From assembly GCA_965240325.2 (NCBI GenBank), contig OZ251245.1, forward strand, positions 930,001-994,000: a stretch of 64,000 nt of DNA. The letters are read 5' to 3'. The DNA is from Rebecca billardiae RCC1528 (taxonomy: Eukaryota; Protista; Haptophyta). How positions within the stretch are numbered: position 1 is the stretch's first letter; the number at the start of each line of letters is the position of its first letter. Below the pieces are notes generated by a model. It saw only the letters and a program-made list of their open reading frames with translations. It ran no database searches and had not been told where the DNA came from. This document shows positions 766 to 12,956 of this stretch, in pieces. Made by a program: the position numbers and the translations under genes.

Positions 766-768
<3 letters not shown>

Positions 769-1074
769 AGTGGCACCGGAAGGGACGATGTTGCGGATAA
801 GCCTTTTCGTCGCCCCGGCGCTCCCCCAGTGGGAAAAAGGATTTTCCGTGGTTTTCACGATGGCTGCCGAACCACCTGGCCTCGGCCGGCGGACGCCTCT
901 CGAACGGACTTCGCTGGCTCGCGCGAAGTCGCCGTCGACGGTGTGGTGCGAGTCGCGCGACGGCCCGTGCGCGATGAGGAGTGCGCCGCGCGCCGTGCGC
1001 GCTTACCACAAGCCCCGCCCCTGCACCTCGCCCAAATCGCCCGCGCAGAGTGCCACCTCTCTCGACTCGCTCAG

Positions 1075-1700
1075 GTCACATGCCCGCCTCGGGCACGGAC
1101 GGGCGTGCTCAAACACGGTGTACGACTTTGGGCAGGCGGGGCTCGTGAACCTAATAAGTCATTGTCGGGCGCCGCGCGGCGTGGTGGGCGGGATGGGCGT
1201 GGTATACACGGATCACGCCGGGCCGACACGGGTTGCGCTTTTCTCATTGTGTGAGCTGGCCACGATGCCCGGCGGCACGTCCTCGGTCGTGCCCGCTGGC
1301 AGCTGCTCCCGCGACCCGCGCGCACAGCTGCGTGTGATTCATCGCGCGGACACCTGCGCGATCGCGTGTCTGGCGCATGCCTACACCAGTGGGTCTCTCT
1401 GCAGGGCCGTTGCGTTCCGGTACGGTCACCCGCTGGCGCAGCAGGGCCGCTTTTCAGGTGTCGATGGCTCCGATCGGCACGGCGCGAGCGACTCTCCACG
1501 ACTTTGGGCAGCCCTTGCCGACGAAGCCAATACGAGTGTACCTGACCGCGCGCGCGCTGATGATAGCGGGTGTGATGCTGCACGGCGTCGCAGCGGGCTG
1601 CCACGCCTGGAGCATCCTGCGGCACGTTCCAACCGGATGCGCGCGCTGCGGCATGCGCTCACGTGTGCGCGAGCACGCCCACCACACCTGCCTGCGCGAC
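1075..1700 (+). pseudogene. possible degenerate Ty1/copia integrase-region fragment
   Basis: HARLGH and VYTDHAGP motifs in ORF 770-1834 resemble copia pre-integrase HxRLGH and integrase xHxDxxGP; the rest is degenerate. Confidence 0.35.
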
Positions 1701-2664
1701 GCGCGCGCAGGCGATACCGATGCTTCCAGTGGGCAAGGGGGCGATCGTGTGGACGCGGCAAGATGTCTGTGCCTACGAGCCTCTCGTGGCGCCCACGATA
1801 CATCCGTTTGGCAGACCGTCGAGCAGCAGTGTGATCGCAGCAGGTGCTTTGCGTTTGCTCGGTGACGACGCAGTACGACCGCCAATCTGAGCTCAAGCAC
1901 TGCTGTGGTCGACGAGCTGCGCGGCGAAGCGTGCGCGCGAGCCACGCGTGTGCTTGCATTGGCCTGTGACTCAACGACTTCGAGCGGGTGGCTTGGAACG
2001 CGCTTTCTGTATCCGCTGCGGCCACGCGCAGGTCGGCGCATCGCTTCGGGGCGCGAGGAGCTGTGATCTCGACAAACAAGCGAGCTGCCTGCCCACTGCA
2101 CGCCCGCGCTCGCGCCAACGGCTGCTGCCGCTCACCAGCCCGGCCAGTTGGCAGTTCGGGCGGTAATACCAGCCACTTGCCGCGCGTGGCCCATCATCGG
2201 CCGCCGCCCGTCTCATCAGCACCGCGCGGCCGCTCCGGTGCCGCGCCCCGGTGCCGGGCCGGTGCCGCGCGGCCCGGATACGTCAGCAGCGCCGGCTCGT
2301 CCGATGACTCACCGCTCGACGCCGACTGTAGGGGGTCCATGACAGCAGCCCACTGAATTGTGATTTTCGACAACCATGCGATTTAGGTGTCTGACGAGCG
2401 TGGCGCTTGCGGAGGCACCCACAAATATGTCCTGGAACCCAGCCCAGCCGTCAGAAGCACCCAAAACCGACTCCGCGCGTCGTTGCGCGGTCGTGCGCGC
2501 ACGCCAGCTGCGCCACTGTGTCACATACAGATTCAGCCAAACGTCAACGACTTGTTATGGCGGCTAAATGACGGTATGTCGTCGGACTTACTTATTCATA
2601 ACCGTTGCAACCCGCCCCAACAAAATTAAGGTGGACTTGCTAAATTTTAGTAGGCACGATGAGT

Positions 2665-4383
2665 TAGGGGGGCCAAACCGCCCATTTAAAAATGAAAAGC
2701 AAAGTCGCGTCGCATTTTCGCTCCGCCCTCGGCCTTTTAGGGTGGCGCGGAGCCTTTTTCTCGGACCCCGCTCGAAAATCGAGCTTCACGCCTTCGGACG
2801 CTCAGAGCTCGGTTCCGCTCCAGCGCGAGCGGCCGGAGGCAGTGGACCGCCGCGCGCTCGCGACCTTTGAGACGCCGAGATGGTCTCGGGTGCGCGCGCG
2901 CGTGACGCTGGTGGGCGCTACTGACCCGTGCCTTTGCGCCACCAGCGGCTCACCACCCGCTTCTTGGCCATCTCGCGCCGTGCGCGGCGCGCGTCGGCCG
3001 GCTTGAATTGGCGCGCTGCGTGCGCCCGTCACGCTACCGCACGGTGTGGCTCATGATCAACTCGCACAGTTGAGATCGATGCTCGCACCAAGTGCCCATG
3101 TATGTATGTGGATGCCCAGCTCGCCTAACCTGCCCTGCTGCGCCGGAATCGCCGTCAGCAGACCGGCGCGAGCTCGCGCGCAACACCTCCGCGGAGCTCG
3201 CAACTGTCATGTTCCGCTTGTAGGGCCCGTGTTTGCACCTGCCGTGGCACTTGCGATGGTCAGTACGTTGGGTATGGGTCACGTGTGCCCTCTGATGGCG
3301 TCTGGGCGCCTCCCGTTCGCCTCTCAGGACGTCGCGGACGTGCTCGCAGGCAGCGGTTGGCTCATTCGACAGGTCCGACGTGCACTCGACCGTGCCTGCA
3401 AGCGCGCCCCTGTGACGCTCATGCCTGCAGAAGCAGATGCAGATGGGCCCTCATGCACCCTGGTGCGCCCAAGACCGGCGGGAGCGTCAGAGACCGTCTC
3501 AATCTTGACACCTTGCACACGCCGGCGCTTGCCGTTGGGCTCCGCGCAGCCAGCCAGGAGCGCCGAACAGCGCCGGATCAGCCTCTGTAGGCCGAATATC
3601 CGCCCCTAAGCCCAGAAATAGCGCGGAACAGGGTAGTGCGTACCTATATGGACCAATCCCATCCAGCCTGGTTTGGTGCAGACACGCCAGCCACCGCCTG
3701 GAGCAGACGTTTGCTGCCGAATCGCATGCTCGGCACTGTGCCGCACTGCGACGACGACAGATTTGACCTGCCTCGTAGGTCTCGGCCAGGGAGCGGTGAC
3801 GGTTGGCTCGAGTCACTTTAAACCTTGACTATGACCGAGAGCACTCCCGGGCTAAGGACGTGGGGCCGGTGCTTTGGGTCTACTATGTCTGCAATACGCC
3901 GTACGCGTGGCCGTATACACAGTCTGAAAACGTATCTCGCAGCTCGAGATCAGACGAGGCTGTATTCATCAGCATGGCGGCTATATACACAGTGGGTATG
4001 TAACGATCGGTGGCTTCTAGTAAACTACATATTTGACAGCCTGCCAGTACACAGCCTATATCGCATGTTGGGACCTGCTGCTGCTGGGGACTCACTGGAA
4101 CGATCTCGCTGAGATGCTCTATCAAAGTGAGGTCGACATGGTCTATATGTCACATATAGGACGACCGTTACATACCGTTTCCAATACGTTCAGGCTCATT
4201 CTAATAAGTAAATATGCTAGCCGTTACGCCCTATATTCAGGGTATGTGCACCTGATTTTTTTACATGGCCGGCCCAGACCCCTCCAGAGGGCAAATGATC
4301 CAGCCCGAAATCAGCTCTAAACACTCGCTAGGACCCGAGCTCGTGGCCGTCAGTAACGCTACAGTGCCACTTTGGCCCCCCTA
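2665..4383. mobile_element. non-autonomous TIR element with 7-bp TSD, nested in 2329-6453
   Basis: TIR TAGGGGGGCCAAA / TTTGGCCCCCCTA; TSD GATGAGT at 2658-2664 and 4384-4390; removing it restores colinearity with the related copy at ~50050-50160. Confidence 0.88.
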
Positions 4384-4880
4384 GATGAGTGCGCGTAGAG
4401 GGCGAGGAAACTAACTACTCCAAGATCGAGCATGTTACCCATTTAATTAGAGACATGTACCCGTATATATGCACTTACCCACCCGTTTATTATACAATGC
4501 GGGTGGGTTTTAAATATATATTCAGGGTGGTGTCAATATGGGGGTACCTTGTTCACTATTCGTGCTGGGTCATCCGAATAGGCCGCGCCGCCGCGCGGAG
4601 TGACGGCGGGCTCATGCCACCGTCAAACCGTCCCGCAGCAGGCCCGGACGGACCTGATGCGGGCGGCGGGCTGCGTGCCGAAGCACACTACCAAGCGCAC
4701 CTCTGAGCATGCCACCATCCCCATAGTCGTGAAGGAGTCCTCCGCCATCGACGCTTGCGTGCGCAGACTAGCAGTCATCGCCGCCGCCGAGCTTGCCGCG
4801 GCCGTTCGGCGACTTCCGTGCCCGTGCTCTGTGTCACCGGCGTCGTCGCCGTTCGTCGTACCCCAGCCCACGCGAGGCCG

Positions 4881-6200
4881 TCACCGGTCCACCGGTACTG
4901 CGGCGGACTGCGCGCGCTTCGCCGCGCGCTCGCCCTCGAGCTCCGCCGCTCTCCTCTCGCGCTCGAACTGGACGCAGTCGGCAGCCATGGCAGCCCGCTC
5001 GGCCGCAGCGCGATCTGTGCCCCCGCGCGCGCTGCGCTCGGTTGCGTCGGCGCGCAAGCTGGCGCGCGCAGCGTCGGCGACGGCGCGCGCGGTCGCCTTG
5101 CGCGACGAGTCCAGCTCCACCTGCTGCTCCGTCAGGCGCACCTGCTGCTCCAAGATGACCGCGTGCTCAGCAGGAGTCACGCGCTGCTCGTGCAGCAGCA
5201 CCTGCACGCGGCCTGCTGCGGACGCGCGCGGCGCGCCGGCGTCGGGGGGCGAGTAGAGGTCGCGGAAGGGGCAGCTGTCGTCGCCGGCGCCCAGCGACGT
5301 GTCGTCGGCATCCAGCTCCGCCTTCCTCTCCGCCGCCGACGCGCCCTGCTTCCGGCTCAGGATGCGCTCCATGTCCTTGTTCTTGCCCTTCCACCACCTG
5401 TGCACGGTCATCAGCCAGATGCCGATCACCTCCAGCAGCGGCGAGTCGTGGCGCGCCGAGATGCCGAGCGCATCCGCGCAGACGAGCGCGAGCGCATTGG
5501 GCTTCTTCGTCCCACCGTCGCGCGCGGTCTGGGCGCACGCCGGGGTGAACACTCTGACCAACGGCTTGTGCTTCTTCAAGTTCTCGAGCATGAGGTCCAT
5601 GAGCGTGCGGAGGAGGTCGAGGAGCATGAAGTTGAGCACCGATGCGTACCGCGGGCGAGTGCCGGCCACGAACCGACCGGTCAAGGGCTGCAGCACGTGG
5701 ATGGCGCGCGCCGCCACCGCCGTCTCCTCGAGCTGCTGCGCGCTGACGTTGACGTCAGGCCGTAGCTCGGGCCTGCACGGTTGCACACAGCCGAGGCCGT
5801 CCGCGGAGGAGGCGAGCCCCTCGGCGGTGCCGGCGGGGACCTCGGGCGGGTCGCACACATCCATGGGCACGCGTGCATCATCATCTGCCGCGCCCTGGAC
5901 CTCGTCATGCCCGGCACAGCGGTCCGCAAGTTGGTCGGCGGTAGCTGGCCCTTGCGGCAGAGGCGTCGCGGGCACGTCCGAGGGCGAGAAGGCAGCGTCG
6001 GGTGGGGAAGGAGACAGCGTCGAGTCGTTGCCGATGCCTATCCCACCGCGTTGCGCATGTTCGTCTCCGCGTTGCTCGCCTGCACGTGCTCCTAGGACGC
6101 GCTCCTTGGTCGCGGGCAGCACACGTTGAGCACGCATATTCAAATCATGAAGCACGAGCGTCGACCGGCCAGCGACTCCCAGCGAGAGCCCGGTCCACAC
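4881..6200 (-). CDS. transposon-borne hypothetical protein with C-terminal coiled coil (possible transposase or accessory remnant)
   Basis: 439-aa ORF inside element 2329-6453; natural-looking globular core (RYASVLNFMLLDLLRTLMDLMLENLKK...VHRWWKGKNKDME); start codon uncertain. Confidence 0.45.
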   Translation of the reverse strand: MWTGLSLGVAGRSTLVLHDLNMRAQRVLPATKERVLGARAGEQRGDEHAQRGGIGIGNDSTLSPSPPDAAFSPSDVPATPLPQGPATADQLADRCAGHDEVQGAADDDARVPMDVCDPPEVPAGTAEGLASSADGLGCVQPCRPELRPDVNVSAQQLEETAVAARAIHVLQPLTGRFVAGTRPRYASVLNFMLLDLLRTLMDLMLENLKKHKPLVRVFTPACAQTARDGGTKKPNALALVCADALGISARHDSPLLEVIGIWLMTVHRWWKGKNKDMERILSRKQGASAAERKAELDADDTSLGAGDDSCPFRDLYSPPDAGAPRASAAGRVQVLLHEQRVTPAEHAVILEQQVRLTEQQVELDSSRKATARAVADAARASLRADATERSARGGTDRAAAERAAMAADCVQFERERRAAELEGERAAKRAQSAAVPVDR

Positions 6201-7099
6201 GAAGCATGGCTACCTGTTCGCAGCCGCCCAGCCGCTCGGCGAGGCGCCTGCGCCGAGGTGGGCGCGCCCAACGGCGAGCGGACGGCCGTCGACGAGGGCC
6301 ATCAGCCTCGCCGACCCCGTTCAGAGCTCCGCTCCCGCGCCGGGGCCAGCCGAGCGCGGATTTGGAATCTGCCGATCGCGAAAACACGCCGAACAAGTTC
6401 TGAAAATGAAAAGAAAAGAAATCAAAAATCAATTTAATCTGATGGACCCCCTACCGACTGACAGTCGATCATCACTCTACTGCTGGCGCTAGTCTCCGAT
6501 CAGCAGTCGTCGTCCATCCGCGCTATATCTCATCATCACCGCCCGGCCGCCGCGGCCGATTCACTCATCGTCTGCTGTCGTCCGCGGCGCGTCACGACTA
6601 TATACTGCTGCGATCGGAGACGCGCGCGGATGATTCATCGAGTCATCGAGTGATCGACGAGTTCGACGACGGCGACCGTCAGACATCCCGGGAGCGCGCG
6701 CGCGGCGCGCAGCCCGATATATGCGCGGATATCACCGGCGGCCGGCGGCGAGGCCGGCGGCGGGGCCGCCGCTCGGCCGCGCCACGCGCCCGCGCCGTAT
6801 ATCGTCAGAGTCGTACGACGCGACATATGAGCCCCCAGCACGGCGCGCCGGCCTCGACGACCGTATGTGATGGGCTGCTCCGATTGTCTGTTCCACGTCC
6901 AGCTGCGCGACTCGTATGATGCGCGCCGGTCGCGGCCCACCCGAACGGCCGCGATGACGCTCCGGGCCGTCCGAGCCGTCAGACTCCGAGAGTATAGTCG
7001 GTGGCACGGCATCCGCCTGCCGGCGCGCGCGGTATACCCAAATCAGTCTGCCCGGTGCGACTGCTGCTCCCTCTGCGGCAGTCGCCTGGATCGATCATC

Positions 7100-7660
7100 G
7101 GGGCCGCCGCGCGCCGCCGCCCACGCTGCGCGGCGTGCAGCTGCACTCGCCGCCGCGCGCCGGGCTCAGCGCCACGCGTCAGCGTTCGCCGCCGATGCCC
7201 ACGCTGCGTGACGCGCACCTCGCACGGCTGTGGCGGCGCGGGCCGAGCCGCGCACGCGCACGCTCGCAGCCACCGCCCACGCTCTGCGGCGTGCAGCACT
7301 CGGCGCCGCCGCGCGCCGGGCTCGGCGCCGCGCGTCAGCATTCGCCGCCCAAAGGCCTTGCACACGCGCCCAACCGATGCCGATGTTTGAAGCCGTCCCT
7401 AGGGCACCCTCCCTCGCCAGCGTCCCATCCCGGCCACGAGCTAGCGTGCCACCGAGCAGCGTCGCAGCCGCGCGGCGCGCGGCTCGGCTGCCCGCCCGGC
7501 CCGGGCGCTGCTGCGAGCTCGCACGCCCATCGCCGCGGGCTCGAGCGGAGCCCTCCGGCACCGAGGCCTTGCATACACGCCCAGACGATGCCGATGCTTG
7601 CAACCATTTCTCTGACGCACTCGCCGGCGGCCGATCGCGGCCGTGAGCCAGCGTGCCACC
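7100..7660. repeat. degenerate GC-rich direct repeats in the subterminal region of element 766-8099
   Basis: GGCGTGCAG..CGCCGCGCGCCGGGCTC and GGCCTTGCA..CACGC..CGATGCCGATG each occur twice. Confidence 0.6.
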
Positions 7661-8099
7661 GGCACGCTTGACGAGTGGGTCACGGCCATCGACAAGCACC
7701 GGTGCCCACTGTTCGGCACGCCGACATCCGTAGACCCAGATGCACTCCAGAAGAGCGACGCTCGGGGCGTCACGATAGACACATACACCACTGGGACTGA
7801 TCCCCACCCATCTAGCTCCATCCTGCGCTTGCTAAGCCCTCGGAAGTGGTTGCACGCGCCTTGCGTGCAACATGTCGACCGCGAGTCGCGATCGCGCCTT
7901 GCGCACGGCGCCCAAGGACGGCTAAGACGGCGACGAAGTGGGTCTGGGCGAGCTTCCTCCGCCTGCCGGGACCCGTGCGCCTTGCCCCCGCGCACGAGCG
8001 CCGGCCGGCGACCGCTCACGTGGCCGTCAGAATTTTTCCGCGGCGGTCGCCGTGCGTGCACGGGTTATCCGCAATCGCCATCGTTCCGGTGCCACTGTG

Positions 8100-8125
<26 letters not shown>
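8100..8125. repeat. (TA)n microsatellite separating two elements
   Basis: Direct reading. Confidence 0.95.
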
Positions 8126-8130
<5 letters not shown>

Positions 8131-8719
8131 GTGTTATTGGTACAATAACTGAGTGTGTACGAGCTGCATGACGGATGGGCTCGCTGTGAGGCCTCTGCAC
8201 TCCACTTACCTGTTTCGTCGCAGCCGCCCTCGCAGAATTTCAGGACTCTTCTGCGGGTACGCCGCGGGTGCACGAGCAAAGTGCCCTGCCAGAGCGGCGG
8301 ACGAACCAGCCATGCTGCTGCCCCCGGGCATTCGGCAAGTCATCGGCGCGAGCACCGCCTCGCTTCTCGATGAGCAGCGAGCTGGGAATCGGCAGCGCAC
8401 AACCTGAGCGCGCCAGATACCTCTCGCCTCGTCCTTCGACCACAGGATGCCCACCATCAACTCGTCTCAGCAAGTCGTCCCTCGGCTGAGCACGTGCACC
8501 ACGCAGCAGCGCAGCAGCAAACGACCAGCAGCTGCTTTGTTTGGGAGACGCCCGACGCGGACCTCCTCCCGGCCGGTGGGCGCCAGCTTAGCCTACTCCA
8601 CGTCGGCGTGCACGCTCACCGCTCTGCACAGGCTCGACCATGCAGAGACGACCTCACGACACTGGGCACGACCAGAGCAAATGGGATAACTGTGCCTTAT
8701 GTGTGAGTGCAAGCTCGCA

Positions 8720-9780
8720 CACGCGGCGGAGCCGCTTGCACTCGACGTCCTTGTGATTGCCGCACGCCGCTGCTCCGCGTCACGCACGCCGCTGCTGCTC
8801 GCCGCCGCTCGCCCGAGCGCGCACTCGCACAGCTGCATGTCGGCCTGCGGCGCGCGACACGCCCAACTTCCACCGCTGCGCCTGCGGCGCGCTCTGCCTC
8901 GACGGCTCGTAGCCTCGCAGCCACCTCGCTACGGCGTGACGGCGGGGCCGCTCGCACTCGTCGCGCTCGTGCTCGTTGCATGCCGTTGCTGCACGCCGCG
9001 CACGCCACCGCTCGCCGCCGCTCGCCCGCGCAGGAACAGGCACACACACGTGCTGCCCGCGGCCAGACTCGCGCGGCGCGGCCTCTCGCGCGACTGCTGC
9101 TCGGCGGCGTGCTCGACCTCGACGGCTCGCCTCGCAGCCGCCTCTCTGTCTGCGGCGCGACGGCGGGGCTGCTCGCACTCGTCGTGCTCGCCGCACATGC
9201 CCGCGCCCGCCGCCGCTCGCCCGCGCAGGAGCGGGCACGCGCGCCCGCGCTGCCCGCGGCCGAACTCGCGCGGCGCGGCCTCTCGCGCGAATGCTGCTTG
9301 GCGGCGTGCTCGACCTCGACGGCTCGCCTCGCAGCCGCCTCTCTGTCTGCGGCGCGACGGCGGGGCCGCTCGCAGTCGTCGTGCTCGTGATCGTTGCATG
9401 CCGTTGCTGCACGCCGCGCACGCCACCGCTCGCCGCCGCTCGCCCGCGCAGGAGCAGGCACATGCCTGCGCGCTGCCCGCGGCCGGACTCGCGCGGCGCG
9501 GCCTCTCGCGCGACTGCTGCTCGGCGGCGTGCTCGACCTCGACGGCTCGCTTCGCAGCCGCCTCTCTGTCTGCGGCGCGACGGCGGGGCTGCTCGCACTC
9601 GTTGTACTCGTGATCGCCGCTCGCAGCTGCTGCACGCCGGAGGCGTCCACAGCCCGCCGCCGCTCGCCCGCGCAGGAGCAGGCGCGCACCCGCGCTGCCC
9701 GCAGTCGGACTCGCGCGGCGCGGCCGCTCGCGCCACCGCCGACACGCGCGGCGCGGCCTCTCGCGCCACTGCTGCTCGGC
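8720..9780. repeat. degenerate ~190-230-bp tandem repeats
   Basis: Recurring GGCGTGCTCGACCTCGACGGCTCGCCTCGCAGCCGCCTCTCTGTCTGCGGCGCGACGGCGGGG blocks. Confidence 0.85.
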
Positions 9781-9782
9781 GG

Positions 9783-10800
9783 GCTCGAGCGGGCTCTGCC
9801 TCTCGCGGCGCGCGGCTCACGCCCCACCGCTCGAGCGGGCTCTGCCTCTCGCGGCGCGCGGCTCACGCCCCACCGCTCGAGCGGGCCGTGCCTCTCGCGG
9901 CGCGCGGCTCACGCCCCACCGCTCGAGCGGGCTCTGCCTCTCGCGGCGCGCGGCTCACGCCCCACCGCTCGAGCGGGCCATGCCTCTCGCGGCGCGCGGC
10001 TCACGCCCCACCGCTCGAGCGGGCCATGCCTCTCGCGGCGCGCGGCTCACGCCCCACCGCTCGAGCGGGCTCTGCCTCTCGCGGCGCGCGGCTCACGCCC
10101 CACCGCTCGAGCGGGCTCTGCCTCTCGCGGCGCGCGGCTCACGCCCCACCGCTCGAGCGGGCTCTGCCTCTCGCGGCGCGTGGCTCACGCCCCACCGCTC
10201 GAGCGGGCTCTGCCTCTCGCGGCGCGCGGCTCACGCCCCACCGCTCGAGCGGGCCCTGCCTCTCGCGGCGCGCGGCTCACGCCCCACCGCTCGAGCGGGC
10301 TCTGCCTCTCGCGGCGCGCGGCTCACGCCCCACCGCTCGAGCGGGCTCTGCCTCTCGCGGCGCGCGGCTCACGCCCCACCGCTCGAGCGGACCATGCCTC
10401 TCGCGGCGCGCGGCTCACGCCCCACCGCTCGAGCGGGCTCTGCCTCTCGCGGCGCGCGGCTCACGCCCCACCGCTCGAGCGGGCTCTGCCTCTCGCGGCG
10501 CGCGGCTCACGCCCCACCGCTCGAGCGGGCCCTGCCTCTCGCGGCGCGCGGCTCACGCCCCACCGCTCGAGCGGGCTCTGCCTCTCGCGGCGCGCGGCTC
10601 ACGCCCCACCGCTCGAGCGGGCTCTGCCTCTCGCGGCGCGCGGCTCACGCCCCACCGCTCGAGCGGGCTCTGCCTCTCGCGGCGCGCGGCTCACGCCCCA
10701 CCGCTCGAGCGGGCTCTGCCTCTCGCGGCGCGCGGCTCACGCCCCACCGCTCAAGCGGGCCATGCCTCTCGCGGCGCGCGGCTCATGCCCCACCGCTCGA
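9783..10800. repeat. 46-bp minisatellite, ~22 copies
   Basis: Unit GCTCGAGCGGGCTCTGCCTCTCGCGGCGCGCGGCTCACGCCCCACC; starts at 9783, 9829 and so on. Confidence 0.97.
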
Positions 10801-10857
10801 GAGGCCCTGTTCTCTCGCGGCGCGCAGCTCTTGCCCCGCCAGCGCGCGGCTCATGCA

Positions 10858-11127
10858 GTGACCCACACGCAGCGGATCGTCTTCATTCGCTATGATGATC
10901 CGCCGGCCGTCACGGCGGTCCAGCGACCTGTGCGTCCAGCGACCTGTCTGTGACCCACACGCCGCGGATCGTCATCATTCGCTATGATGATCCGCCGGCC
11001 GTCACGGCGGTCCAGCGACCTGTGCGTCCAGCGACCTGTCTGTGACCCGCGCGCCGCGGATCGTCATCATTCGCTATGATGGTCCGCCGGCCGTCACTGT
11101 GGTCCAGCGACCTGTGCGTCCAGCGAC
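10858..11127. repeat. 92-bp tandem repeat, ~3 copies
   Basis: GTGACCC(A/G)C... at 10858, 10950 and 11042. Confidence 0.9.
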
Positions 11128-11134
11128 ACAACCC

Positions 11135-11815
11135 GCCGCTCGACAGGCCTGCCTCTCGCGGCGCGCGGCTCATGCCCCCGCCGGCGCGCGGCTCACGCCC
11201 CGCCGCTCGGGAAGCCCGGCCTGCGCGCGGCTCACGCCCCGCCGCTCGAGAGGCCCCGTTCTCTCGTGGCGCGCGGCTCATGCCCCGCCCGCGCGCGCCT
11301 CACGCCCCGCCGCTCGAGACCCCTTCTCGCGGCTCGCGGCAGGCCCCGGCCCTCGCGGCGCACGGCGCATGCCCCGCCGGCGCGCGTCCTAAGCCTCGCC
11401 GCTCGAGAGGCCCCGTTCTCTCGCGGCGCGCGGCTCATGCCCCGCCAGCGCGCGGCTCACGCCCCGCCGCTCGAGAGGCCCCGTTCTCTCGTGGCGCGCG
11501 GCTCATGCCCCGCCAGCGCGCGCCTCACGCCCCGCCGCTCGAGACCCCTTCTCGCGGCTCGCGGCAGGCCCCGGCCCTCGCGGCGCACGGCACATGCCCC
11601 GCCGCCGCGCGTCTTACGCCTCGCCGCTCGAGAGGCCCCGTTCTCTCGCGGAGCGCGGCTCATGCCCCGCCAGGGCGCGGCTCACGCCCCGCCGCTCGAG
11701 AGGCCCCGTTCTCTCGCGGCGCTCGGCTCATACCCCACCGGCGCGCGGCCCCCTCCCCACCGCTCATGAGTCCCTGCACTCTCGCGGCGCGCGGCTCATC
11801 CCCTCCGGCGCGCGG
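11135..11815. repeat. higher-order degenerate derivatives of the 46-bp unit
   Basis: Recurring CGCTCGAGAGGCCCCGTTCTCTCG(C/T)GGCGCGCGGCTCATGCCCC. Confidence 0.8.
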
Positions 11816-12870
11816 CTGCGCTTGCGCATGAGCTTCCGCAGCTGCTGGACGCGCTTCTCCTCGTCGGGCTGCAGTACGTTGGGTATAATGGGACTTCCAA
11901 CTCGTCGACGACGCACACCCTGAGCAAACAAATGGGACCACAGTGTGTGCCTCAACGAGGATCAACGAGCCGGCCGCTCCCATTGCGGACACGCGCCGCT
12001 CGTCTGATCGACAATCCCATTATACATATCATCGACCACCAGCAGCAGCTCCTACTGCTTGATGAGGTGCTCGGTAACACGCAGGCGCAGCCTCATCATC
12101 AATCATCATCGGCTGGGCCCTGGCGTCGAGCTGCGTGTACACGTGGTGTTATTGGTACAATAACTGAGTGTGTACGAGCTGCATGACGGATGGGCTCGCT
12201 GTGAGGCCTCTGCACTCCACTTACCTGTTTCGTCGCAGCCGCCCTCGCAGAATTTCAGGGCTCTTCTGCGGGTACGCCGCGGGTGCACGAGCAAAGTGCC
12301 CTGCCAGAGCGGCGGACGAACCAGCCATGCTGCTGCCCCCGGGCATTCGGCAAGTCATCGGCGCGAGCACCGCCTCGCTTCTCGATGAGCAGCGAGCTGG
12401 GAATCGGCAGCGCACAACCTGAGCGCGCCAGATACCTCTCGCCTCGTCCTTCGACCACAGGATGCCCACCATCAACTCGTCTCAGCAAGTCGTCCCTCGG
12501 CTGAGCACGTGCACCACGCAGCAGCGCAGCAGCAAACGACCAGCAGCTGCTTTGTTTGGCCCGCCCATCCCGCCCCTGTCTGGTCCGCAGTGCCGCGCCG
12601 GTGGCCTGCTCCCTGGATTCATCGAAAGACGACAGCGAATTTGTCCGCCTGTCCGGACAGTCGGTGGGACCACAGTGTGTGCCTCAACGAGGATCAACGA
12701 GCCGGCCGCTCCCATTGCGGACACGCGCCGCTCGTCTGATCGACAATCCCATTATACATATCATCGACCACCAGCAGCAGCTCCTACTGCTTGATGAGGT
12801 GCTCGGTAACACGCAGGCGCAGCCTCATCATCAATCATCATCGGCTGGGCCCTGGCGTCGAGCTGCGTGT

Positions 12871-12874
<4 letters not shown>

Positions 12875-12956
<82 letters not shown>
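12875..12956. repeat. (AT)n microsatellite
   Basis: Direct reading. Confidence 0.98.

Follow-up and report, generated by a model that had tools for sequence, protein, structure and literature searches.

To our knowledge, the tyrosine recombinase (YR) retrotransposons are the least understood order of retroelements, and experiments on where they integrate and on what their internal repeats do are confined to DIRS-1. Among them are the Ngaro elements, reportedly first described in zebrafish by Goodwin and Poulter in 2004. Published Ngaro elements have the layout A1-[ORFs]-B1A2B2, in which split direct repeats surround the open reading frames (ORFs), and are accompanied by solo AB repeats (PMC8547959; PMC4157794) that have been attributed to recombination between the repeats (PMC8547959). 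A methyltransferase-like domain is present in PAT and DIRS elements (PMC4157794). Experiments have shown the internal complementary region (ICR) of DIRS-1 to be indispensable (PMC7192593), and the junction of the DIRS-1 circle is self-complementary. DIRS1-like elements have been proposed to integrate by YR recombination without a target-site duplication (TSD), through a 3-bp junction shared with the target (PMC3266345). The subject of this report is an element in a 64,000-nucleotide stretch of the haptophyte Rebecca billardiae RCC1528 (contig OZ251245.1; C29:930001-994000 of the 72-Mb, 41-contig assembly), hereafter the window, whose own positions are used below. The segment from 8128 to 12874 is probably a recent insertion of a non-autonomous element, its coding region replaced by tandem repeats, that belongs to a group of Ngaro-like YR retrotransposons specific to this genome. 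This reading is carried by the architecture and youth of the element, its multiple copies with ends in (TA)n, its lack of coding capacity, a shared and co-varying joint signal, and the isolated A-S-B units of its family. The parts kept in cis are an A repeat with a GTGG-hairpin start, a B repeat ending in ACAC, and the internal B1/A2 joint (a slash here marks a junction).

Structure of the window element

A repeat search and reading of the sequence recovered the two 417-bp A repeats and two 210-bp B repeats that an initial annotation of the window had placed in the order A1...B1A2-105bp-B2, and the full order of parts is (AT)13-GT-A1-body-B1/A2-105 bp-B2-(AT)41 (Table 1). The unit begins no more than 2 bp from one (TA)n tract and ends exactly at the next, as had been claimed, and these tracts contrast sharply with a window that is 60-80% G+C. 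A1 and A2 differ by a single mismatch in 417 bp, at A position 118 (A at 8245, G at 12260), and B1 and B2 are identical at 210 of 210 bp, in keeping with the proposed youth of the insertion. Near-identity of the repeats and the recurrence of the family elsewhere in the genome put the pattern far beyond chance. The internal joint reads GTGTACAC/GTGGTG and is indeed the end-to-start junction that had been proposed, B2 ending in GTGTACAC and A1 starting with GTGGTG.

The body between A1 and B1, X, consists mostly of tandem repeats. No Pfam domain was found in the long ORFs of X, the sole match being sub-threshold and to a repeat-translated frame, and comparison of X with the recombinase elements by tblastn and blastn gave no similarity. 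A tyrosine recombinase is not encoded by the window element, which has neither the domain nor any likeness to the YR frame; it can therefore only be a non-autonomous derivative. The view of the element as non-coding, with a body of satellite-type DNA, thus stands. A likeness between the spacer S and the ends of X, such as a circle-junction origin of S might predict, was not seen by eye.

Table 1. Parts of the element and its flanks, in window positions.
Feature	Position	Strand	Remarks
5' flank, (AT)13 at 8100-8125, then GT at 8126-8127	8100-8127	+	ATAT(GT)/GTGG left junction recurs at many copies
A1, 5' split direct repeat, 417 bp, start GTGGTG	8128-8544	+	
A1 inner hairpin, GTTATTG-GTA-CAATAAC	8133-8149	+	
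Body X, 3388 bp, non-coding	8545-11932	+	X-like repeats also in C5, C32 and C26 copies
X, unique part	8545-8989		
X, 197/223-bp tandem repeats	8990-9733		
X, 46-bp tandem array, 22.9 copies	9783-10837		
X, 92-bp tandem repeats, 2.9 copies	10858-11127		
X, 68/157/225-bp repeats	11132-11817		
X, unique end part	11818-11932		closes with purine-rich CAAACAAAT directly before B1
B1, internal copy of the 3' repeat, 210 bp, start GGGACC, end GTGTACAC	11933-12142	+	
B1/A2 joint signal, 39-nt imperfect palindrome	12137-12175	+	folding and conserved core in joint alignments
A2, internal A copy, 417 bp, 1 mismatch to A1	12143-12559	+	
S, 105-bp spacer between A2 and B2	12560-12664	+	present too in isolated A-S-B units (L006, L009)
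B2, terminal B copy, 210 bp, equal to B1, end GTGTACAC	12665-12874	+	
3' flank, (AT)41 directly after B2	12875-12956	+	

Copies and insertion sites in the genome

The A and B repeats are not unique to this locus: A has 59 matches in the genome and B has 25, and the copies have the same ends in (TA)n, as expected of a mobile family in the initial annotation. A second composite in the same A1-X-B1/A2-S-B2 order occupies 4,644 bp on the minus strand at C5:2126262-2130905; its A2 is identical to the window A1, it has internal deletions of its own, and it is bordered otherwise than the window element, by (TA)n at its left end and (AC)n(AT)n at its right. Isolated A-S-B units stand at C11:205751-206495 and C5:272020-272758. 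Copies consisting of A only are found at C7:2797465, C16:1715966 and C8:2466517; in L056 (from 1883 onward) and L057 (from 1887 onward) such copies stop exactly at the A boundary (GCTTTGTTTGG), and what follows A-only copies is (TGTA)n, or (CA)n then (TA)n, in place of S or X. Three copies begin at the proper start of A and break off within it, and truncated copies span A positions 1-302, 1-239 and 1-181. The copy cut at position 239 (L015, G000:C7:919742-922983, approximately 1474-1770) has a perfect 27-bp direct duplication on both sides, and an inverted unit of the coding family described below adjoins it. A sister family, approximately 76-86% similar, has 781-bp A-S-B units that are 91-95% alike at more than 10 loci. 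An autonomous partner beside the A-only copies of L059 and L061 was considered and rejected, the ORFs there being host genes (leucine-rich repeat and glycosyltransferase-like).

The microsatellite targeting that had been proposed is borne out by precise ends at many copies. The start of A meets the microsatellite as ...ATAT/GTGG in almost every copy, sometimes as ATATGT/GTGG or (GT)n/GTGG, and the end of B meets it as ...ACAC/ATAT or ACAC(AC)n(AT)n. A genome-wide count gave 574 A-start motifs and, for the reversed control, 2; of these starts, 157 (control 0) are preceded by AC and are thus internal B/A joints. On the reverse strand, with each site listed once, ATAT lies within 4 nt before the A-start in 207 of 306 cases and AC in 85 of 306. 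Overall, about 70% of A-starts abut ATAT and about 27% are internal joints; on contig C1, 23 are flanked by TA, 6 are joints and 1 is neither. The whole group, and not just the window copy, shows TA targeting and the internal joint, and most elements of the group must be non-autonomous, because the genome holds only five recombinase genes. Isolated A-S-B units of the coding family also lie in (TA)n, and in L042 one of them follows a sister-family unit after 6 bp in a single TA tract.

Another gene-less family, with the hairpin GTTATAGG-GAA-CCTATAAC, forms an array of five 874-bp units, head to tail and joined B/A, at G000:C11:1461151-1468392 (known as an array by coordinates only). In this family, joint pairs with a spacing of about 872 bp recur widely in the genome, arrays reach up to five units, and one unit was read in L022. 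A spaced pair of 8.4 kb, likewise known by coordinates, lies on C7. Directly upstream of the window element, at 766-8099 and in the same original (TA)n tract, is a 7.3-kb element with terminal inverted repeats that start CACAGTGG; it lies between TA runs at 622-765 and 8100-8125, its arms (740-803 and 8062-8125) are 88% complementary, and its four longest ORFs contain no Pfam domain. The TA tract that it shares with the window element is therefore a landing pad for elements of two or more unrelated kinds.

The B/A joint

The outer stem of the joint signal (12137-12143 with 12169-12175) spans B1/A2 and is set off by a 4+4 internal loop from an inner stem (12148-12154 with 12158-12164) with the loop GTA, the whole folding at -8.0 kcal/mol (z = -2.5). 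The joints of five genome families, folded separately as single strands, take the same structure (z -2.1 to -3.2), the common design being an outer stem across B/A, a 4+4 internal loop, and an inner stem of 7-8 bp with a 3-nt loop, with the consensus ...AC/GTGG-N-GTTAT..ATAAC-N-GAGTGT.... Between families the inner stem shows compensatory changes (TTG with CAA, AGC with GCT, AAC with GTT, AGG with CCT), as does the outer stem (GTACAC with GTGTAC, GGACAC with GTGTCC, TAGAC with GTCTA). Compensation was judged from the independent folds rather than from pair counts, a MAFFT alignment of the joints having misaligned the variable stems. Where TA stands in place of B, as it does before A1 of the window element, the inner hairpin alone folds.

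The CAC/GTGG-hairpin-GAGTGTGT design of the joint is common to the window element and to the coding elements in L067 and L069, and alignable sequence between window and coding elements is confined to the joint and the start of B1. A purine-rich AAACGGGAC-type motif precedes the start of B1, not that of B2, in six families. Mobilization of the window element in trans is possible because its ends and joint signal are common to it and the coding elements, and the sharing of this end-joining signal with recombinase-bearing elements suggests a way in which the whole group may target TA repeats. Beyond this genome, two distant metagenomic relatives have a comparable hairpin between the end of the polymerase-YR frame and the next ORF, and one of the two, L077, of marine origin, folds into the full bipartite design; the exact joint pattern had no match in the JGI metagenome contigs.

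Coding relatives

Longer copies coding for reverse transcriptase (RT), RNase H and a tyrosine recombinase had been anticipated, and copies with the same layout and joint signal are present in the genome. A scan for Phage_integrase (PF00589), followed by a protein scan, gave only five tyrosine recombinase genes, 97-100% identical: those of C33, C18 and C23 lie in open frames of 1317, 981 and 963 amino acids, that of C12 has one stop, and that of C38 comprises the recombinase only. In L067 the YR frame is followed, in the same orientation, by the B1/A2 joint, the spacer and B2, and in C33 an A1 copy precedes B1/A2-S-B2 by about 4.4 kb, on the strand of the YR gene. The coding element is thus about 5.65 kb long with the layout A1-[frame]-B1/A2-S-B2 and a spacer of about 340 bp (query positions 389-730). 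Isolated A-S-B units occur in this family as well, and C21 carries A-S-B-A-S-B.

A protein encoded directly before the YR carries an NPGP motif and matches the C-terminus of P0003, a 1060-residue protein from a public assembly (Logan contig), at 94% identity over a 72-residue overlap with the G000 frame. P0003 and metagenomic relatives 30-40% identical to it have YxDD-type polymerase motifs, and longer relatives of P0003 have a C-terminal recombinase with HSxR and a conserved Y. An AlphaFold model of P0003 (20 sequences; mean predicted local distance difference test score 74) matched the RT-RNase H of Moloney murine leukemia virus, HIV-1, HERV-K, foamy virus, cauliflower mosaic virus and Ty3 with probability 1.00 in a fold search, and the Atlas features of P0003 point to RVT_1 clusters with a score of 0.97. 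Sequence searches of Pfam, NCBIfam and PDB gave no match for the P0003-type RT, and a genome scan with RVT_1 (PF00078) listed 55 other RTs, the C33 element not among them. The polymerase of the coding lineage is predicted to have a retroviral-type RT-RNase H fold, and the coding partner is probably a Ngaro-type YR retrotransposon as defined previously (PMC8547959; PMC4157794). No Pfam methyltransferase match was obtained in P0003 or in the L069 frame, though Pfam missed their RT too.

Several further features of these relatives were recorded. In L069:1-1890 (G000:C18:1303935-1305824), residues 50-66 of a single open frame, between the end of RNase H and the recombinase, read LRGERVGEARNPGP, which resembles a 2A-type skipping signal; the same motif ends P0003. 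The distant polymerase relative P0025 has a C-5 cytosine methyltransferase domain (PF00145), and another, P0029, is annotated from a Prymnesium sp. assembly. In L067 (1895-2110 and 2150-2250) the YR stop codon is followed by tandem CCTTTGTAGGCACAG-type repeats, then a long C-rich run and A8; 3' tandem repeats are therefore a trait of the family, from which the satellite body of the window element may have been seeded. Metagenomic RT-RNase H-YR relatives 33-35% identical (L075, from ENA GROS21-1 scaffold_2353; L076; L077) lie on contigs that are exact tandems or overlap at their ends, L075 repeating 8,760 bp at 100% with a period of 8,939 bp, and each has an ORF of about 835-893 amino acids 340-610 bp after the polymerase-YR frame. 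These contig repeats fit tandem or circular copies in the hosts.

Alternative explanations

A number of observations weigh against the placement of the window element in a Ngaro-like group mobilized by its coding relatives. The evidence for the RT comes from P0003 rather than from the RT part of the C33 copy, and the identity of this predicted RT rests on fold and motifs, to which Pfam is blind. The window hairpin has an inner-stem sequence unlike that of the coding elements, and that their YR recognizes the window joint is an assumption; the RNA and circular intermediates, like mobilization of the window element in trans, are inferred. Both flanks of the window element are the same microsatellite, (TA)n, in which a TSD would be hidden. 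Truncated copies with an exact 5' end and flanking direct duplications are not predicted by YR circle integration, which likewise gives no account of the A-only copies or of the recurrent extra GT at the left junction. The locus structure was read from the assembly, and in the public sequencing run the part beside the 46-bp array gave just five short contigs, all of them related copies.

These points bear on alternative accounts to differing degrees. The composite could consist of a long A-X-B unit followed head to tail by a short A-S-B unit, the two brought together by circle integration at the 5' junction of a resident A-S-B or derived from a concatemer, in which case the split repeats would be a by-product. 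Lone A-S-B units at many loci in the window, sister and coding families fit such an origin, as do the B/A-joined arrays of up to five 874-bp units and the A-S-B-A-S-B of C21, but the same long and short composite, with near-identical repeats, stands at a second, unrelated TA locus on C5, the C33 coding element has the same layout, and 157 joints are without TA between B and A. We regard this account as unlikely, and as not fully exclusive of the preferred one, with which it shares enzyme and site. Somewhat more doubtful is DNA-only movement of the Crypton type, by which the YR would excise a circle and re-insert it with no reverse transcription. The fusion of the YR gene behind RT-RNase H in the longest open frames argues against it, the 574 ends and the dispersed near-identical copies fit copy-and-paste, and no empty excision sites are known; on its side are the recombinase-only copy with intact repeats (L067), the lack of any RNA-stage mark in the non-coding element itself, and the capacity that a YR could have to resolve two direct joints into circles.

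The truncated copies invite a third account, that of a target-primed element (LINE/SINE or Penelope-like) read on the minus strand, the 3' end of which would be the reverse complement of the A start with a (TA)n tail, with 5' truncation and pseudo-LTR-like partial tandems (LTR, long terminal repeat). One end is constant and the other variable (A 1-302, 1-239, 1-181), L015 has its perfect 27-bp flanking duplication, and a terminal hairpin beside a microsatellite is typical of such 3' ends. This account is nonetheless very improbable: the coding relatives carry the motif downstream of the RT-RNase H-YR frame on the same strand, the B...ACAC end is no less precise and likewise borders the microsatellite, the upstream unit has a different interior rather than a 5' truncation, and no endonuclease-RT partner has these ends. 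Membership among non-LTR or Penelope-like elements was rejected because, with the sense strand taken from the coding relatives, the truncations fall at the 3' side; full units also have two precise ends, and TSDs are found only in rare truncated copies. An LTR retrotransposon with solo LTRs was also rejected, given that A-S-B does not stand on both sides of the body, the order being A1-X-B1/A2-S-B2. Least probable of all is an assembly artefact or local segmental duplication; the public run yields only short contigs of relatives and the locus is rich in tandem repeats and microsatellites, yet the same architecture recurs at C5 between different flanks and the 157 joints are spread over many contigs of the assembly.

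A proposed cycle and its significance

On the preferred reading, a non-autonomous member of the Ngaro-like group, the window element would be transcribed and its transcript copied in trans by the RT-RNase H of the coding relatives. The copy would be closed, B end to A start, with the internal B1/A2 joint keeping that sequence by analogy with the DIRS-1 ICR. The joined ends would form the imperfect palindrome of about 39 bp, with its outer stem, internal loop and inner hairpin, a design that is conserved and compensated among the families, and the single YR family of the genome would recombine CAC/GTG with an alternating purine-pyrimidine microsatellite, nearly always (TA)n, as the observed flanks suggest. 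Recombination between two joints or two repeats may then yield isolated A-S-B units and multi-unit arrays. By our own reasoning, opening a two-joint circle at one B/A joint would give A1-X-B1-A2-(S)-B2, and a recombinase acting on both joints would give an A-S-B circle and an A-X-B circle; such resolution could therefore produce many isolated A-S-B units with no need of homologous recombination.

CAC/GTG has nothing in common with TA, but alternation of purine and pyrimidine marks the joint region as well as both kinds of target, (TA)n and the occasional (GT)n, which suggests recognition by shape. We tentatively advance a broader idea, which we consider possible though short of probable: the bipartite palindrome of about 39 bp might be the attachment site of a eukaryotic YR integrase that chooses alternating purine-pyrimidine microsatellites, chiefly (TA)n, by DNA shape and not by homology of sequence, one YR family of five copies serving six or more families (about 570 ends) that are unrelated in sequence and mostly without genes, and resolving two-joint molecules into self-inserting A-S-B mini-circles. 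If that were true, the occurrence of the same design in L077 would make the attachment-site mechanism lineage-wide.

The genome offers a compact, testable system, with one recombinase family, an abundant, simple (TA)n target, and a defined joint signal, about 39 bp long, for which compensatory variants occur naturally. Its gene-less passengers number in the hundreds, and the one in the window carries 3.4 kb of tandem repeats and so illustrates how transposition can spread satellite DNA. Should circles bearing the joint be inserted into TA repeats by the YR, this would account for the way mobile elements are nested in such tracts here, and the long-proposed model of circle integration would become directly testable.

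Comparison with known systems

Non-autonomous LARD and TRIM elements (large retrotransposon derivatives and terminal-repeat retrotransposons in miniature), together with solo LTRs, show how termini can be kept in cis while a coding body is lost or replaced, with mobilization in trans and solo units arising by recombination. The window element resembles them in having kept its cis termini while its coding body was replaced, and differs in that its termini are split repeats around a recombinase site, not TG...CA LTRs with a fixed TSD. Non-LTR elements of the R1/R4 clades (for example Dong, Waldo and Mino) insert into simple-sequence targets by means of an endonuclease and target-primed reverse transcription. 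The strong preference for simple sequence is shared with these elements, but the candidate integrase here is a tyrosine recombinase.

Among YR retroelements, the PAT-like members of the DIRS order (Pat1, Toc3, Kangaroo) likewise have split direct repeats with YR and RT-RNase H; as for the methyltransferase of PAT and DIRS elements, none was seen in the G000 or P0003 proteins, whose RT Pfam missed as well. As in the DIRS-1 ICR, an internal sequence reproduces the joined element ends. In DIRS-1 the terminal repeats are inverted and element and target have a 3-bp junction in common, whereas the repeats here are direct and CAC/GTG shares no bases with TA.

The closest parallel is with Ngaro. The A1-B1A2B2 order, described in the initial annotation as the hallmark of Ngaro and PAT elements, is present and matches the published layout (PMC8547959), with the refinement that A2 and B2 are parted by a spacer, in the coding elements too, and that A-S-B units, A-only copies and tandem arrays also exist. 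Differences from Ngaro are that the window element is gene-less, with 105 bp between A2 and B2 (about 340 bp in the coding elements), that insertion is almost exclusively into (TA)n, and that a conserved bipartite palindrome lies at the B/A joint; in the searchable literature, an incomplete set, no description was found of Ngaro elements with microsatellite-specific insertion, gene-less derivatives, a spacer between A2 and B2, or a structured joint. The correspondences lie in the A1-[internal]-B1A2B2 layout with scattered isolated AB units, as in Cafeteria burkhardae (PMC8547959), and in coding relatives with the YR downstream of RT-RNase H and the internal repeats downstream of the YR. The window element is best regarded as a non-autonomous variant of the known Ngaro-type YR retrotransposons with split direct repeats.

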